A stretch of DNA of 64,000 nucleotides, from sequence record NC_042013.1; one strand, written 5' to 3'. The notes below the pieces were generated by a model, which worked only from the letters and a program-made list of their open reading frames with translations, did no database searches and was not told where the DNA came from. This document shows, in pieces, positions 4,333-46,579 of this stretch. A program made the translations under genes and the position numbers. How positions within the stretch are numbered: position 1 is the first letter of the stretch; each line of letters starts with the position of its first letter.

Positions 4333-4407
4333 GGGAGTGTGGCTGACTGGTAAAGCAGATGCCTTCAAAACATTGAGATGCGGGTTCGATTCCTGTCACT
4401 CCCACCA
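4333..4407 (+). tRNA. tRNA with UCA anticodon (opal-suppressor / Trp-like, atypical)
   Basis: Acceptor GGGAGTG/CACTCCC, D arm, loop CT-TCA-AA (TCA 4365-4367), T loop TTCGATT, encoded CCA; C31xA39 mismatch. Confidence 0.85.
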
Positions 4408-18884: not shown

Positions 18885-19016
18885 ATGGATCAGCATGAAT
18901 TAAACGAGCGAATGAAAGCCCAAGACCGCAGGGCGACACGGGACTTTTTTATAATGATTGGCCTTATCTTACTTCTAATAGGAGTATGGCTTGGTGTTTT
19001 TTATAACATAAGTTAA
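18885..19016 (+). CDS. small single-TM protein (43 aa)
   Basis: MDQHELNERMKAQDRRATRDFFIMIGLILLLIGVWLGVFYNIS. Confidence 0.45.
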   Translation: MDQHELNERMKAQDRRATRDFFIMIGLILLLIGVWLGVFYNIS

Positions 19017-19381
19017 AGTTTGCCGTGTTCAAGATATATTCCCGCGAGGTTTTTATCACGCGGGACATACAATATGTTTGCCTTAACTTTTGAACGAATA
19101 CGATCAGCTTCCGTTTTAAAAAGATTAAATTCATCTTTTTTTATTTTCCAAGTACCCATTGCCTGATTAACAACAAGCTTGCTATCCCCATAGATGGTTA
19201 CGTTGGTATATCCTTTTTCCTCGCAATGTAGAAGCGCGTCTATCAACGCAGACCATTCAGCCACGTTGTTAGTTCCCATTCCGAAGTTTCGTCTGTCGTA
19301 AACCTCTTTGCCGTTTACAACATAACACGTTTCCATCATACCGGGGTTTGGGTTACAACCACCATCAAAATATATAATCAT
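19013..19381 (-). CDS. ribonuclease HI-family protein
   Basis: YFDGG..PNPG, TNNVAEWSAL, GDSKLVVNQ, VPRDKN. Confidence 0.9.
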   Translation of the reverse strand: MIIYFDGGCNPNPGMMETCYVVNGKEVYDRRNFGMGTNNVAEWSALIDALLHCEEKGYTNVTIYGDSKLVVNQAMGTWKIKKDEFNLFKTEADRIRSKVKANILYVPRDKNLAGIYLEHGKL

Positions 19382-19405
19382 AATAGCCTCGTTTGATTAC
19401 AAGGC

Positions 19406-19411
19406 TATTTA
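19406..19411 (-). promoter_or_regulatory. late promoter core TAAATA
   Basis: 25 nt upstream of RNase H start. Confidence 0.45.
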
Positions 19412-19423
19412 GTTGTTTATTTT

Positions 19424-19852
19424 TTACTTGTAGTCATTCGTGGTTGTAGGAATATTTGCTCTAACTTCCTTCAACGGGCCGATGATATAAAATCTTTCTG
19501 AAGGATAGGCTGCTGCAACTTGCCGTGCGACCTCAATCGCTTCTTCCTCTGTAGAATATCCTCGAGATTTCAAAAATACCCCATCACGCTTTCGAACGAT
19601 CTCAAACCAATTATTTTCGTTCGCGGACATCGTTAGAGACTTGGTAAGAAATTCAAACCCGTCGACATTCTCAACTGGTTCAGGTACAGACTCCCTGATA
19701 TTAAGGCGCGCAATAATAGAGTCGAGTTTGTTGTGTAGTTTCACACTGTCATTAAACAGATATTCATTTCTAGCTTTGATAGATGAAATATTACCAGTTA
19801 GGATTTCCATCGTACGTGTCATACGATTCATAAAATCTTTAAGACCAAACAT
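19424..19852 (-). CDS. hypothetical protein
   Basis: 142-aa ORF with SD. Confidence 0.65.
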   Translation of the reverse strand: MFGLKDFMNRMTRTMEILTGNISSIKARNEYLFNDSVKLHNKLDSIIARLNIRESVPEPVENVDGFEFLTKSLTMSANENNWFEIVRKRDGVFLKSRGYSTEEEAIEVARQVAAAYPSERFYIIGPLKEVRANIPTTTNDYK

Positions 19853-19865
19853 TTATTAATCCTTT

Positions 19866-20051
19866 TTAAAATTTGACGGTAGGATACTTTGCCTCAATAT
19901 CGGCAATCTGTTTCTTTGCAAACATAAGGGTGTTTACACTACCAACTTTTTCGGCAAGGTCAACCATTCGTTTCCAACGATAGTACGAATCGACGTCGTA
20001 TGCCCACGTACGGTTGTCTGACTGATTTTTATATTCACGCACGTCGAACAT
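19866..20051 (-). CDS. hypothetical protein
   Basis: SD GGAGG. Confidence 0.65.
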   Translation of the reverse strand: MFDVREYKNQSDNRTWAYDVDSYYRWKRMVDLAEKVGSVNTLMFAKKQIADIEAKYPTVKF

Positions 20052-20247
20052 GTTGCACCTCCGTTAATTATAAAACTAGAATGATTTGAAGATGTATTCA
20101 AAAATGGCAATCAAACCACAATACGTAACCAGATTCCCAAATTCAGATGGTACGTGCGGGAAGATAATTGCAATTCTGTCGTCCATTTGAATAACTCCTT
20201 TTTGTTTCATATTCAATAGTTATACATCGAACTATAAAAATGTCAAC

Positions 20248-20275
20248 AAAAAAACCAGCCTTTCGGCTGGTTTTT
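20248..20275 (-). terminator. intrinsic terminator closing the tRNA/ncRNA operon
   Basis: CCAGCC-GAAA-GGCTGG plus U tract on minus strand. Confidence 0.85.
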
Positions 20276-20338
20276 CAAAGCAAGGAGTGCTAATCGGGTT
20301 TTTTCTATTCCAAAGATAACCAAAAAGCTTCGGCTTTG
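20276..20338 (-). ncRNA. 63-nt repeated small-RNA element, copy 1
   Basis: CAAAGCCGAAGCTTTTTGGTTATCTT-variable-ATTAGCACTCCTTGCTTTG; second copy at 40642..40705. Confidence 0.65.
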
Positions 20339-20341
20339 TAG

Positions 20342-20426
20342 CGTTACAGATGGCATTCGAAGCCAAACCATCCCCACCATCAAAGTGCTATCGTATGCCG
20401 GTCTTCTACGATAGTGGTCTGTAACG
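20342..20426 (-). ncRNA. tRNA-like structured RNA abutting tRNA-Cys
   Basis: 9-bp closing stem CGTTACAGA/TCTGTAACG, T arm TGGC-TTCGAAT-GCCA, 8-bp internal hairpin. Confidence 0.7.
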
Positions 20427-20502
20427 TGGAGGCGCGGGTCAGGGTCGAACTGACATAAATCTCCTTTGCAGGGAGCTACCTAACCATTCGGTGCACCGCG
20501 CC
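20427..20502 (-). tRNA. tRNA-Cys (GCA)
   Basis: GGCGCGG/CCGCGCC acceptor, loop CT-GCA-AA, U73, encoded CCA. Confidence 0.95.
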
Positions 20503-20511
20503 AATGAAGGT

Positions 20512-20553
20512 AATGTACTATATAACGACATTACCTGTCAACTACTATTTATA
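20512..20553 (-). promoter_or_regulatory. tandem late (TATAAATA) and sigma70 (TTGACA-18-TACATT) promoters
   Basis: TATAAATA 20546-20553; TTGACA 20536-20541; TACATT 20512-20517. Confidence 0.65.
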
Positions 20554-20857
20554 AAAATTTTACAAGAGAACCAGATGGTGGATTAGGCTCGACGTCATTT
20601 CCTGCCATATTAATGCAGTTGACCATATGGGCAATGCAAGAAAGAATAGCAATGTGGCGCTTATAAGCCTCGCTGGCGGTGTTTCTATTAAAGGTACGTG
20701 GTAGCTTCTTCAGTGACTGCAATCGATCAAGAGTAGCCTCTACGTCAAGCATACGGCGTTTTTTAGAACGCTTACGGCTTTCTTGTTCTTCTTGTGCTCG
20801 AAATTCCAGAGTACGGCGTCTTGCTTCGAGTAGTGCTTGGATATTTTCTACTTCCAT
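20549..20857 (-). CDS. hypothetical basic protein
   Basis: Start set at MEVENIQ; SD AGGA. Confidence 0.55.
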   Translation of the reverse strand: MEVENIQALLEARRRTLEFRAQEEQESRKRSKKRRMLDVEATLDRLQSLKKLPRTFNRNTASEAYKRHIAILSCIAHMVNCINMAGNDVEPNPPSGSLVKFL

Positions 20858-20873
20858 TATTATCTTCCTTGTT

Positions 20874-21218
20874 TCAAATGTTGATGTATTTTGCCAAATC
20901 AGAACTGATCTTTTCAATATTTTCTTTTGTTTTTTCTTTATTTTTTATGTAATCGTTTTGGCGTGTTGTGTACATGGCGTCTGATTTCTTTGCAAAATCA
21001 CGATGTGACGATTGACATACCGACCACGCAACATTCGCCTCACGCGCATTCTGTAACGCGTACTTCTCGATTAGCTTTGCCATTTCGGTTGCAAAGAAAA
21101 ATGCACGCAAACCACCGGGATAATCATCCGGCATTCGTTTTTCTAGATCGGTCATCTTATCTAATTCACTTGGATGAATGGACCACATCCTATAAGCCAA
21201 GTCGTCTACGTCCTTCAT
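20874..21218 (-). CDS. hypothetical protein
   Basis: Operon packing. Confidence 0.55.
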   Translation of the reverse strand: MKDVDDLAYRMWSIHPSELDKMTDLEKRMPDDYPGGLRAFFFATEMAKLIEKYALQNAREANVAWSVCQSSHRDFAKKSDAMYTTRQNDYIKNKEKTKENIEKISSDLAKYINI

Positions 21219-21516
21219 TTTCAATATACTCCAATGTTTCAAGTAGCGTTGTTACAGGAATTTCAGATGTAAGTTCGGATTTATACTCAACTGTATCTCT
21301 TACCTCTACATCACCAGCAAAGCGACGATCAATATAAATCGTACTACCCTCGTATAATAAATGTTCAGGACAGGAAATCCATTTTTTAGTCAAATGGTGA
21401 ATAGCTAAAATTATCAATTCGTCTACGGTGAGGTTTATATCATATACTGAAACGGTATCACCACCCTCGTAAATATGGCGAAGCATCAGGTCGTATTCTG
21501 GAGTGTATTTGTTCAT
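21190..21516 (-). CDS. hypothetical protein
   Basis: 108-aa ORF. Confidence 0.55.
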   Translation of the reverse strand: MNKYTPEYDLMLRHIYEGGDTVSVYDINLTVDELIILAIHHLTKKWISCPEHLLYEGSTIYIDRRFAGDVEVRDTVEYKSELTSEIPVTTLLETLEYIENEGRRRLGL

Positions 21517-39997: not shown

Positions 39998-40465
39998 TTA
40001 AAGTAGTTTTAGATCGCCAGTAATTGGTTCTAGATTTTTATCGATATCAGGACCAATAGCCATTGCTGTCCACGTTGGAACACCTTTGAATTCCGTTTTT
40101 CCAGCATCTTGAATGGCACTTACAAGCAAACCAGCCTCAATTGCTTTTCGTTCAATTTCAAAGAATTCTTCCTCAGAATCAACAGAGACGCAAATCTTCG
40201 TAAATGGACCACGTAGCCATCTTTTGACACGGTAATCATCGCCATACTTGATATAAGTAAGCTGGCTTGCATGAGAAACTTGTGCAGCAATTTTGCCTTT
40301 TCTCATATTCAAATCTTTTCTAACTACGATGATTTGTTTGTAATAAAGATTTCTAAATCGGTCTAAAAACGCATCGATCTTTTCAAAAACGAGATTACCG
40401 ATATGATAAAATCCGATGAGCATCAAAACCATCATAGAAAATTTAATCAATCCGTCAATGTCCAT
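39998..40465 (-). CDS. pth2: peptidyl-tRNA hydrolase, Pth2 type, with N-terminal hydrophobic extension
   Basis: VVRKDLNMRKGKIAAQVSHA, DAGKTE, TAMAIGP, ITGDLKLL. Confidence 0.93.
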   Translation of the reverse strand: MDIDGLIKFSMMVLMLIGFYHIGNLVFEKIDAFLDRFRNLYYKQIIVVRKDLNMRKGKIAAQVSHASQLTYIKYGDDYRVKRWLRGPFTKICVSVDSEEEFFEIERKAIEAGLLVSAIQDAGKTEFKGVPTWTAMAIGPDIDKNLEPITGDLKLL

Positions 40466-40606
40466 TTCAACCTCACATATTATTTCTAATCAAACCGTAA
40501 ACGTACAAGCACGCGGCAATTATCATAAACGAATATGCTACGATATCCATATTGTTTAAGATTAAATCATCAATGTTGTATAAAAAATTCATTAAAGCTA
40601 CCTATC

Positions 40607-40632
40607 AAAAAATAGCCGCATTAAGCGGCTAT
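40607..40632 (-). terminator. intrinsic terminator after repeat copy 2
   Basis: TAGCCGC/GCGGCTA plus U tract. Confidence 0.8.
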
Positions 40633-40641
40633 CTAAAAAAT

Positions 40642-40705
40642 CAAAGCAAGGTTTGTTAATTGGATGTTTCATAAGCAATAAGATAACCAAAAAACTTCGG
40701 CTTTG
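40642..40705 (-). ncRNA. 64-nt repeated small-RNA element, copy 2
   Basis: 25/26 identity at the 5' end and 16/19 at the 3' end with 20276..20338. Confidence 0.65.
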
Positions 40706-40722
40706 AAATTACATATTACCCG

Positions 40723-41019
40723 TTAAAGGGTAGTATTGTCAATAATTTTATATCGAATAATGTCATTTTCTGAACCATAATGATCCCAAGGAACCTCATT
40801 TGATCTTACGATGATAGGGGTATCATTTCCACGCCGCACAATCATCACCGTTTTTCCACTAACGTTAGCAGGATAATTAGACGTATCACAACCACACCAC
40901 CAGCGCCAGCCGTCCTCGGCTTCTCTCGTCAACTTTAGAATATATTCGGCCAAAGCATTTGCGGACGAGGAGTTAATATCGTTTGCAATTTCATTAATTT
41001 TTTTATTTAAGTAGTCCAT
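40723..41019 (-). CDS. hypothetical protein
   Basis: C-term W.H.GSENDIIRYK. Confidence 0.6.
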   Translation of the reverse strand: MDYLNKKINEIANDINSSSANALAEYILKLTREAEDGWRWWCGCDTSNYPANVSGKTVMIVRRGNDTPIIVRSNEVPWDHYGSENDIIRYKIIDNTTL

Positions 41020-44807: not shown

Positions 44808-46579
44808 TCCTCGTTATCGATATAACTCGTAAAGTCGTTTTCTTTTTGTGCATAGATTATTCTATCAACCCTATTAGTCAGAATGTCTTTATGCGAAATC
44901 AAGAAAATATCTTTATTATGTTCACGAACGAATGACTTTAGTACGTCAAGTGCTGCTTCTGTTCCGGCATTATCCATACCAGAGTCTACCAACTCATCAA
45001 TGATCATAACGTTTAGTTTACCATACATAATTTCCCAACAATCTCTAAATGCCCACGTCAATGATAGAATCAAACGATTTTGTTCGCCGTTCGACAACTG
45101 TTCAAAATCGTATTCCCTACCGTGCTTAATGATGTCAACACTCAAGTCATTACGGAAAATAACCTCGTGGGGCAAATTAAGCTTTTCAAGATATACACCA
45201 AGGCGAGTATTCAAAAATGCAATATTTTGATCTATAATCTTCTTACGAATAAATGAATCTTTACTCGTTAACAGTTTTAGCAAGAAATCCTGATGTTCTT
45301 TGATCTCTGTAAGATTGTTAATCATATCATATGACAATTCCTGAAGACCGTTAGTTGCCAACGTTTCTATTTGTTCAATATACGGGTTAACGGTTTCTTC
45401 CTCACGGGTTATGTCTTTTTGCATCGTGTCTATTTTGTTTTTCTGATTGATAGCTTCCTCAATAGATGAATAAACACACGCCGGAACATCACCAATTTTT
45501 AAAATATCATCTGCAATGATTTTTGCGGCATTTTCATATACATCAATCTCACCAACGATTTCGTCTGAACGTTCAGTAATTGAAATCAAATTAGAACCAA
45601 GATCGTTTAGCATTTGTTCATTAATGTTGTCGTGAATATCTTGACCGCAAGCATGGCATTTATGGTCTTGTGCCATTTGAATCTTTTCAACCAGCATATC
45701 GGATTGTGATTTTAAAGACGCCTGTTCACGAATTAAGCTTTTGAGTTGTTTTTCAATTAAAGCATATTCACCTGAAAGGCGATTTAATTCCTGCTGCTTT
45801 TTATGGCTTTCTATTTCTGCCTCGATATCGAATGTAGAAATCTGAAGAAGCTTTTCGGTTAAAGTAGCAACTCTTTTTGAATGCTCTCTATCCCATAGAT
45901 TCTTTTTCGCTTTCAAACCATTAATAGCACTTTCAACGCGTTCATTACTAGACTTAATAGTAGATATTCTGACATCTTCGGCTTTGATTTCATCTTTAAC
46001 AACTTTGATGTTTTGACGAAGGGTATCCGCTTTTCTTGAAAGTTGCGTAATACTAATTAATTCTTCGATGATTTCACGTTGCGCTGCTGCACCTAATGAC
46101 AAAAACGGTGTTGTTCTTGTATGAAGAGCAACAATATGCTTGAAAAGAGTATGTGACATTCCAACGACTTTTTCAATTTCGTTTTGTGTCCATTTGCTTT
46201 CACCGAGTGATTCATCTACATCAGGTGCGTTGATTTCGGTATTATTAACCGTATATTTCATGTAATTTGGTTTGCGGCCACGCTCGACACGATATTCAAC
46301 CCCATTCTTTTCAAATTCAATAATAACAACCATATCTTTCTGATTGATATTATTAATTAGATTGTCTTTTTTAATCTGTGAAAGGGGAGTTCCGAACAAA
46401 CCAAAAGATACCGCCTGAATGCCTGTAGATTTTCCTGCACCGTTACGGCTGTCAGCATCACTTTGATCTAAGTTGTTACCTAGCATTAGTGTCAAGTCGA
46501 TGTTATTGAAACGCAAAGTCTGTGGAACATTACCAACAGACAAAAAGTTTTTCATAGTTACTTGTTTGATTTTAATCAT
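44804..46579 (-). CDS. gp46: recombination endonuclease ATPase subunit (Rad50/SbcC-like)
   Basis: NGAGKST, zinc hook CHACG, LSNGE signature, IIDE. Confidence 0.95.
   Translation of the reverse strand: MIKIKQVTMKNFLSVGNVPQTLRFNNIDLTLMLGNNLDQSDADSRNGAGKSTGIQAVSFGLFGTPLSQIKKDNLINNINQKDMVVIIEFEKNGVEYRVERGRKPNYMKYTVNNTEINAPDVDESLGESKWTQNEIEKVVGMSHTLFKHIVALHTRTTPFLSLGAAAQREIIEELISITQLSRKADTLRQNIKVVKDEIKAEDVRISTIKSSNERVESAINGLKAKKNLWDREHSKRVATLTEKLLQISTFDIEAEIESHKKQQELNRLSGEYALIEKQLKSLIREQASLKSQSDMLVEKIQMAQDHKCHACGQDIHDNINEQMLNDLGSNLISITERSDEIVGEIDVYENAAKIIADDILKIGDVPACVYSSIEEAINQKNKIDTMQKDITREEETVNPYIEQIETLATNGLQELSYDMINNLTEIKEHQDFLLKLLTSKDSFIRKKIIDQNIAFLNTRLGVYLEKLNLPHEVIFRNDLSVDIIKHGREYDFEQLSNGEQNRLILSLTWAFRDCWEIMYGKLNVMIIDELVDSGMDNAGTEAALDVLKSFVREHNKDIFLISHKDILTNRVDRIIYAQKENDFTSYIDNED

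Follow-up and report, generated by a model that had tools for sequence, protein, structure and literature searches.

A conserved pair of predicted, paralogous small RNA genes in Agrobacterium phage Atu_ph07

Introduction

Paralogous small RNAs, RNAs that trail tRNAs, and stable phage RNAs have each been described in their own settings. OmrA and OmrB are products of adjacent sRNA genes in enterobacterial hosts, depend on Hfq, and have known targets. The 3'ETS of an E. coli tRNA operon serves as a sponge for sRNAs. The tRNA gene cluster of phage T4 encodes stable non-tRNA RNAs, named species 1 and 2. The jumbo phage PA5oct produces unexplained ncRNAs of 236-619 nt, seen by RNA-seq and without relatives outside its close kin (PMC7318152).

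This report addresses two paralogous, unannotated and conserved stretches of Agrobacterium phage Atu_ph07, copy 1 and copy 2, that we predict to be non-coding RNA genes, each ending in its own terminator. Like OmrA and OmrB, they form two paralogous sRNA genes with near-identical ends, a diverged middle and terminators of their own. They differ from that pair in lying 20 kb apart in a phage, in having unlike terminators, and in showing no sequence relationship to it. Copy 1 resembles the tRNA-trailer sRNAs of the 3'ETS type, as it follows a tRNA within what appears to be one transcription unit and would be freed when the tRNA is processed, whereas copy 2 has its own promoter-like site and no tRNA, and there is no sequence similarity to the 3'ETS. 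As a phage-encoded small RNA adjoining or co-transcribed with a tRNA, copy 1 is also comparable to T4 species 1 and 2, and both copies resemble the PA5oct ncRNAs in being phage-encoded and without relatives beyond close kin. However, no homology to the T4 or PA5oct RNAs was detected, and unlike the PA5oct RNAs, those of Atu_ph07 are predicted from sequence alone. These three groups are the closest functional parallels, none of them being a sequence relative.

The phage genome and its RNA annotation

The window, which is the whole stretch of DNA analysed here (64,000 nucleotides), covers the last 64 kb of Atu_ph07 (NC_042013.1 / MF403008.1; 490,380 bp; genus Polybotosvirus), with 100% identity by megablast, and a window position equals the record position minus 426,380. 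The RefSeq/GenBank record holds 714 CDS and no annotated RNA genes. The paper on this phage reported 33 tRNAs (PMC6102473), as against the 31 that ARAGORN finds genome-wide, and makes no mention of small RNAs, promoters or terminators. The tRNAs unannotated in the record include a tRNA-Cys at 20427-20502 (-) and a tRNA with a UCA anticodon at 4333-4407 (+), the latter labelled SeC by ARAGORN and named an opal suppressor in the Atu_ph07 paper (PMC6102473).

Sigma-70 promoter-like sites of the TTGACA type number 84 in the genome, compared with 28 +/- 4.6 in shuffled sequence. This roughly 3-fold, genome-wide enrichment indicates that they are a real promoter class in Atu_ph07, and they are probably promoters for the host polymerase.

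Two copies of one element

Two related sequences on the same strand had been claimed in a preliminary description of this DNA, and both are present, as read on the minus strand: copy 1 at 20276..20338 (-; 63 nt) and copy 2 at 40642..40705 (-; 64 nt). Model R1, a covariance model built from the two copies and run over all 490 kb, scores them at 89.9 and 93.3 bits, respectively. They are identical in 51 of 64 aligned columns, with one 1-nt indel, and their similarity stops sharply at both ends of the element, with nothing up- or downstream that aligns. There are exactly two occurrences of the 26-nt 5' block in the window, as against none in 100 shuffles, and the 19-nt 3' block is likewise present twice. 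The degenerate 3'-block pattern, with up to 3 mismatches, is weak evidence when taken alone, as 0.52 matches are expected and at least 2 appear in 7 of 100 shuffles.

The interior of the element had been called a variable core. The lengths of 63 and 64 nt do result from a single 1-nt indel, but the core varies only in part, with roughly half of its positions common to both copies. Because of this indel, the conserved 3' block stands in different frames in the two copies, so that they share no peptide and the conservation is one of nucleotides. The element had also been described as dispersed, which is correct in that the two loci are separate, 20.4 kb apart on the strand of all neighbouring genes, but there are exactly two copies in 490 kb. 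Neither blastn nor model R1 found a third copy in the 490-kb genome, the next R1 match having E>3, and two partial look-alikes, at 45961 and 53718, both lie inside coding sequence and are ascribed to chance. A MITE-like element was considered and rejected, given two copies only, a terminal inverted repeat of 6 bp, and no flank duplication by eye. As regards a CRISPR-repeat mimic, the phage genome has these two copies of the element and no repeat-spacer array.

The copy-1 locus

The transcript carrying copy 1 probably starts at a sigma-70-type promoter-like site at 20512..20541 (-), composed of TTGACA, 18 nt and TACATT, with 10 of 12 matches; the 46 nt before the tRNA-Cys are identical in all relatives. 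The first RNA of this unit is the tRNA-Cys (GCA) at 20427..20502 (-), which has an encoded CCA, is called by ARAGORN, and reaches 45.1 bits with the Rfam tRNA model against a gathering score of 29. Between the tRNA and copy 1 lies an 88-nt hairpin at 20339..20426 (-; -28.4 kcal/mol, z -2.3), whose two ends form some 9 bp in the manner of an acceptor stem, and one arm of which has a 7-nt loop, UUCGAAU, resembling a tRNA T-loop. Only 3 nt separate the end-paired hairpin from the element, and 80 of its 88 positions are identical in the divergent relative L027. The hairpin was tried as a tRNA or tmRNA and rejected, as ARAGORN made no call even with introns and relaxed thresholds, and Rfam gave no match at E<=10. 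It may be a processing handle for tRNA-processing enzymes, or else a tRNA relic.

The unit ends in an intrinsic terminator at 20248..20275 (-), with an 11-bp stem, a GAAA loop and U7 (-16.3 kcal/mol, z -4.7), whose hairpin starts directly after the element and is kept in relatives. Altogether, the 270-nt copy-1 stretch folds into four separate modules, namely the tRNA, the 88-nt hairpin, the element and the terminator.

Just past the U-run of this terminator lies a promoter-like site for gp641, with TTGACA at 20246..20241 and a -10 box at 20224..20219 (-); in L027 the two boxes are conserved and the spacer between them has diverged. Given that gp641 has this site of its own, the copy-1 element is probably not the leader of that gene. 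Within the region 20076-20246 (-), gp641 contains an ATG at 20186 with a strong Shine-Dalgarno sequence, which would yield a 36-aa hydrophobic protein and is probably the real start, shorter than the annotated form. In the same neighbourhood, gp638 (19013-19381, -) is annotated as a 'phosphoglycerate mutase family protein', while its Pfam matches are RNase_H (E 2.6e-11) and RVT_3 (E 4.4e-10), and it looks like an RNase H-like protein.

The copy-2 locus

Copy 2 has a sigma-70-type promoter-like site directly before it, at 40713..40742 (-), with TTGACA, 18 nt and TAATAT (10 of 12 matches). This site overlaps the end of gp681, its -10 box ends about 7 nt before the element, and copy 2 begins at the predicted transcription start. 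The -35 boxes of the two sites, that of the copy-1 unit and that of copy 2, are perfect. In both sites, the -35 and -10 boxes also enclose an inverted repeat, of 8 bp in the tRNA-Cys promoter and 5 bp in the copy-2 promoter, which could be an operator or a matter of chance.

A terminator directly after each copy had been proposed. For copy 1 this is accurate, but copy 2 is followed by a 7-nt U-rich spacer, evident in the sequence at 40635..40641 (-), and then by the intrinsic terminator at 40606..40634 (-), which has a 10-bp stem, a 5-nt loop and U6 (-15.3 kcal/mol, z -4.4) and is kept in L021 and L023 except for one deleted U. A simple terminator scan listed neither terminator, and both were evaluated by hairpin energy and z.

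Between the copy-2 terminator and pth2 sits an unannotated small hydrophobic ORF at 40473-40592 (-), of 39 aa (25 aa if translation starts at an internal ATG, 40550), whose protein is conserved in L021 despite many nucleotide changes. Its stop codon lies just before the Shine-Dalgarno sequence of pth2, which suggests translational coupling of the two. Small hydrophobic ORFs thus follow both terminators and are conserved as proteins in relatives; the two proteins have no detectable relation to each other.

This arrangement raises the question of a cis-acting leader or attenuator, in which the element and its terminator would be a conditional stop for the genes downstream, that is, for the small membrane ORF and pth2 at copy 2 and for gp641 onward at copy 1, with the short RNA as a by-product. 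Such a role is possible at copy 2, where the order is promoter, 64-nt element, strong terminator, small ORF and pth2, and where no convincing conserved promoter lies between the terminator and the small ORF and pth2. A small hydrophobic ORF conserved after each copy would suit it as well, and short RNAs that end early in 5' leaders are, as general knowledge, a known product of phage transcription. However, the promoter-like site of gp641 past the copy-1 terminator argues against a leader role common to both copies, and copy 1 sits behind a tRNA, not in a 5' leader. Additionally, pairing between the element and the arms of the terminator, as an anti-terminator would need, reaches only 4-5 bp by eye, the terminators and downstream genes of the two loci are unrelated, and no riboswitch or leader family matches either locus in Rfam at E<=10. 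We therefore regard attenuation as unlikely.

Relatives and distribution

Relatives were found by protein search with Pth2 (gp680) and gp642 in ENA and Logan assemblies, and the close uncultured ones include contigs of 492-498 kb. Conservation in relatives had been put forward as the point at which the element might fail, and here it held: model R1 places the element at the syntenic position in every relative contig that reaches it, so that both copies are kept at syntenic sites. Both paralogs are found together on single contigs of about 0.49 Mb (L025 with L037, and L028 with L038). Orthologs of copy 1 are identical in L025, L026, L028, L029 and L031 and have 3 differences in L027 and L032, while those of copy 2 have 1 difference in L023, L024 and L037-L039 and 5 in L021 and L022, with 4 of these 5 clustered in the 3' internal loop. 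In all, there are five distinct element sequences, and L021/L022 and L027/L032 represent the more divergent lineage.

A wider search of phage genomes had also been suggested; blastn of each copy against 50,697 phage records returned Atu_ph07 alone. Among 72,556 plasmids the sole blastn match was to the copy-1 terminator, and an exact-pattern scan of IMG/VR gave Atu_ph07 itself alone. Seven pattern matches in GTDB genomes and JGI metagenomes were dismissed as chance, being apparently coding and none having the 3' block, and a gapped pattern of both scaffold ends gave 5 matches in IMG/VR, also dismissed as chance because their interiors are dissimilar. Unrelated pth2-bearing phages are without the element. 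Intermediate relatives were not found in the collections, in which the ATPase gp677 has homologs at 98-99% identity and the next ones at 45%. The phage records matching Pth2 do not include Sinorhizobium phage AP-J-162, which PMC11242549 names.

Some relatives also differ locally from Atu_ph07 near the two loci. When L027 is compared with window 19000-21300, the upstream genes gp642 and gp643 are 95-99% identical to Atu_ph07 and the downstream genes about 75%; this mosaic boundary at the tRNA/sRNA unit suggests that recombination took place within the unit or beside it. A gene of 234-238 aa with a faint NUMOD3 match lies between the homologs of gp637 and gp636 in three relatives (L025:6407-7123, L026:6419-7123, L029:6419-7123) and is absent from Atu_ph07, L027 and L028; it is probably a mobile homing-endonuclease-like gene with a presence/absence polymorphism. 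In L023, a relative otherwise 98% identical, Pth2 matches over 81% of its length (L023:10001-10465 against window 39998-40465), and the DNA alignment of the gene has 69 gap columns and 74.5% identity. A local exchange seems to have replaced part of this Pth2, apparently its membrane-anchor end.

Selection on the element

The genes on either side of copy 2 have 73-80% nucleotide identity in the divergent lineage. The copy-2 promoter is identical in 39 of 40 positions in L021, where the gp681 CDS reaches only 80%, and the element keeps 59 of 64 and the terminator region 36 of 42 positions in this lineage, with identity at 39% in the stretch past the terminator. Likewise, copy 1 in L027 retains 60 of the 63 element positions, with about 76% identity in the downstream genes and 57% in the post-terminator spacer. 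The divergence of the copy-2 element (5/64) compares with 23.5% in the flanking genes (P=0.001), that of copy 1 (3/63) with 24% (P=4.5e-5), and promoter and element together, set against flanking-gene divergence, give P=1.2e-6. The element is under purifying selection, stronger than that on the flanking protein genes, in two independent lineages.

The changes that do occur are unevenly placed. All 8 of the 8 substituted columns among orthologs fall outside the modelled stems and the first 25 columns; each apical region has 1-2 changes, and columns 52-55 change freely. The apical region differs between the paralogs and is conserved among the orthologs of each. An anti-Shine-Dalgarno motif, CUCCUU, had been pointed out in copy 1; it lies within the freely changing columns, copy 2 does not have it, and the orthologs in L027 and L032 have CACCUU in its place. 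By eye, the nearby Shine-Dalgarno sequences show no change that would match that of the motif, and this reading fails.

Selection also bears on whether the element has any function of its own. It might instead be a duplicated 3' trailer, a stability or processing module beside a terminator, or a DNA-level site defined by its 6-bp inverted-repeat ends, and the presence of only two copies, confined to one narrow phage clade, would agree with this, as would the weak folding energy and the lack of a target in the phage that are given below. The strength of the purifying selection in the two lineages speaks against it, as does the copy-2 promoter, which is conserved even where it overlaps wobble positions of gp681. 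Furthermore, the changes between paralogs preserve a base pair, and by eye there is no target-site duplication and no longer terminal repeat. An element without independent function thus seems to us improbable.

RNA structure

The modelled fold consists of a closing 6-bp stem, a 3-bp stem and a 4-bp stem, with an A/U-rich apical region of 22-23 nt. Single-sequence folds return it, and RNAalifold returns it independently. The C/U change between the copies, taken then to fix the strand, and the capacity of the 5' end to pair either locally or with the 3' end, had both been noted before. The C-to-U change is accompanied by a G-to-A change 38 columns away, across the 3-bp stem, and this partner favours the long-range fold, although it is a single event, the only compensatory one among the five distinct sequences, and every sequence is just as compatible with the local 5' hairpin. 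A competing helix of 8 bp is available to most copy-2 orthologs, and the 63/64-nt body does not fold with better energy than shuffles (z -0.8 to -1.7). The three-stem fold is therefore given here as a plausible model.

Searches for families, partners and targets

Comparison with Rfam by Infernal had been recommended, and it was run with Rfam 15 (4227 models) at gathering thresholds and in a lax search at E<=10; neither copy matches a family. Nothing passes the gathering threshold over the elements, and in the window only two tRNAs do. The best lax matches over the elements reach 27.8, 27.7 and 30.2 bits against thresholds of 55, 47 and 50, are carried mostly by the terminator hairpins, and in the 30.2-bit case run into the promoter. 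Neither copy is called as a tRNA or tRNA-like RNA by ARAGORN or the Rfam tRNA model. The sequence does show features expected of an independent sRNA, with promoter-like sites, a putative processing route for copy 1, intrinsic terminators, and an indel that speaks against a coding role.

The preliminary description had proposed an antitoxin mimic of the pseudo-ToxI kind. In common with ToxI and pseudo-ToxI, the element would be a small RNA carried by a phage that might counter a host system, and the small hydrophobic ORF after each copy opens the further option of a type I antitoxin RNA for that ORF. However, ToxI consists of tandem repeats cut by a partner nuclease, whereas each Atu_ph07 locus carries one unit only, lacks a partner gene and matches no family. 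Tandem Repeats Finder detects no tandem array at either locus, ToxI is not among the Rfam matches listed at E<=10 for either locus, and PADLOC finds no defence or toxin family among 10 neighbouring proteins. For duplexes with both small-ORF mRNAs, the fraction of shuffles doing at least as well was 0.34-0.99, that is, complementarity no better than shuffled, and the two small proteins are not detectably related. These results disfavour the pseudo-ToxI proposal, and an antitoxin role of either type is highly improbable.

Target prediction had been proposed too, and within the phage it gave no target above chance. Complementary stretches of at least 13 nt are absent from the phage outside the two loci, and duplex energies of any part of either RNA against 2293 phage start regions are no better than those of shuffled RNA. 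A full-length duplex scan of the phage was discarded, as it yielded only physically meaningless long duplexes.

The lack of a base-pairing target in the phage would suit a protein-binding RNA, acting as a sponge, decoy or handle, whose scaffold is recognised by a host or phage chaperone, nuclease or defence protein; the earlier 'anti-defence decoy' and 'guide-like' readings are both covered by this explanation, and the results speak neither for nor against these two. The 5' 25 nt are invariant in the five variants and in both paralogs, and the folds are thermodynamically weak, which together point to sequence-specific recognition rather than to stable structure. A probable early expression of the host-RNAP type would also suit a function in host takeover. 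Nevertheless, no partner is indicated: the neighbouring proteins scanned have no RNA-binding or defence family match, their only Pfam matches being RNase H/RVT_3 (gp638) and DUF6011 (gp678), and a model of scaffold binding alone does not call for the conservation of the paralog-specific apical region among orthologs. Binding of a protein as the whole explanation is thus rather unlikely in our judgement, if not to be neglected.

Proposed mechanism and significance

A further claim of the preliminary description, that the element acts as RNA from the minus strand, is upheld by the agreement of promoter-like sites, terminators, gene orientation, the frame-breaking indel and conservation. Very probably, the element is a discrete small RNA. 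Our preferred reading, held tentatively and at a little short of even likelihood, is that of a genus-restricted pair of paralogous early phage sRNAs acting in trans.

In this preferred scheme of a trans-acting pair, the mature RNA would be about 95-100 nt long and consist of the 63/64-nt conserved body and its own terminator hairpin. Copy 2 would be transcribed directly from its own host-type (sigma-70-like) promoter, and copy 1 would be cut from the tRNA-Cys transcript as a 3' trailer, with the 88-nt, T-loop-bearing hairpin as a possible cutting handle for its release. These two routes, one by a promoter and the other by cleavage of a tRNA transcript, would reach the same 5' end. Both RNAs would then act in trans early in infection, with the invariant 5' 25 nt and the closing stem as the shared functional or protein-binding part, and with the A/U-rich apical region giving each paralog its specificity for a host or phage RNA, presumably through base-pairing.

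A bolder variant would treat the invariant 5' half and closing stem as a handle bound by one dedicated protein of phage or host and the apical regions as swappable specificity modules, making the pair a small programmable RNA-protein system or an anti-defence decoy. It is speculative and improbable; if true, such a system or decoy would be deployed early, with its own promoter and a tRNA operon as the two sources.

The sRNAs of lytic and jumbo phages are barely charted, and the pair would add a new, genus-restricted RNA family, one that is ordinary in kind. It offers a clean case built from sequence only, with two paralogs, defined ends, purifying selection and two routes to what is perhaps the same 5' end. 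Additionally, the two RNAs are concrete candidates to look for when transcripts of Atu_ph07 on A. tumefaciens C58, a tractable phage-host pair, are mapped. Should they be early trans regulators or decoys, they would represent an extra RNA layer in the host takeover by this group of phages.
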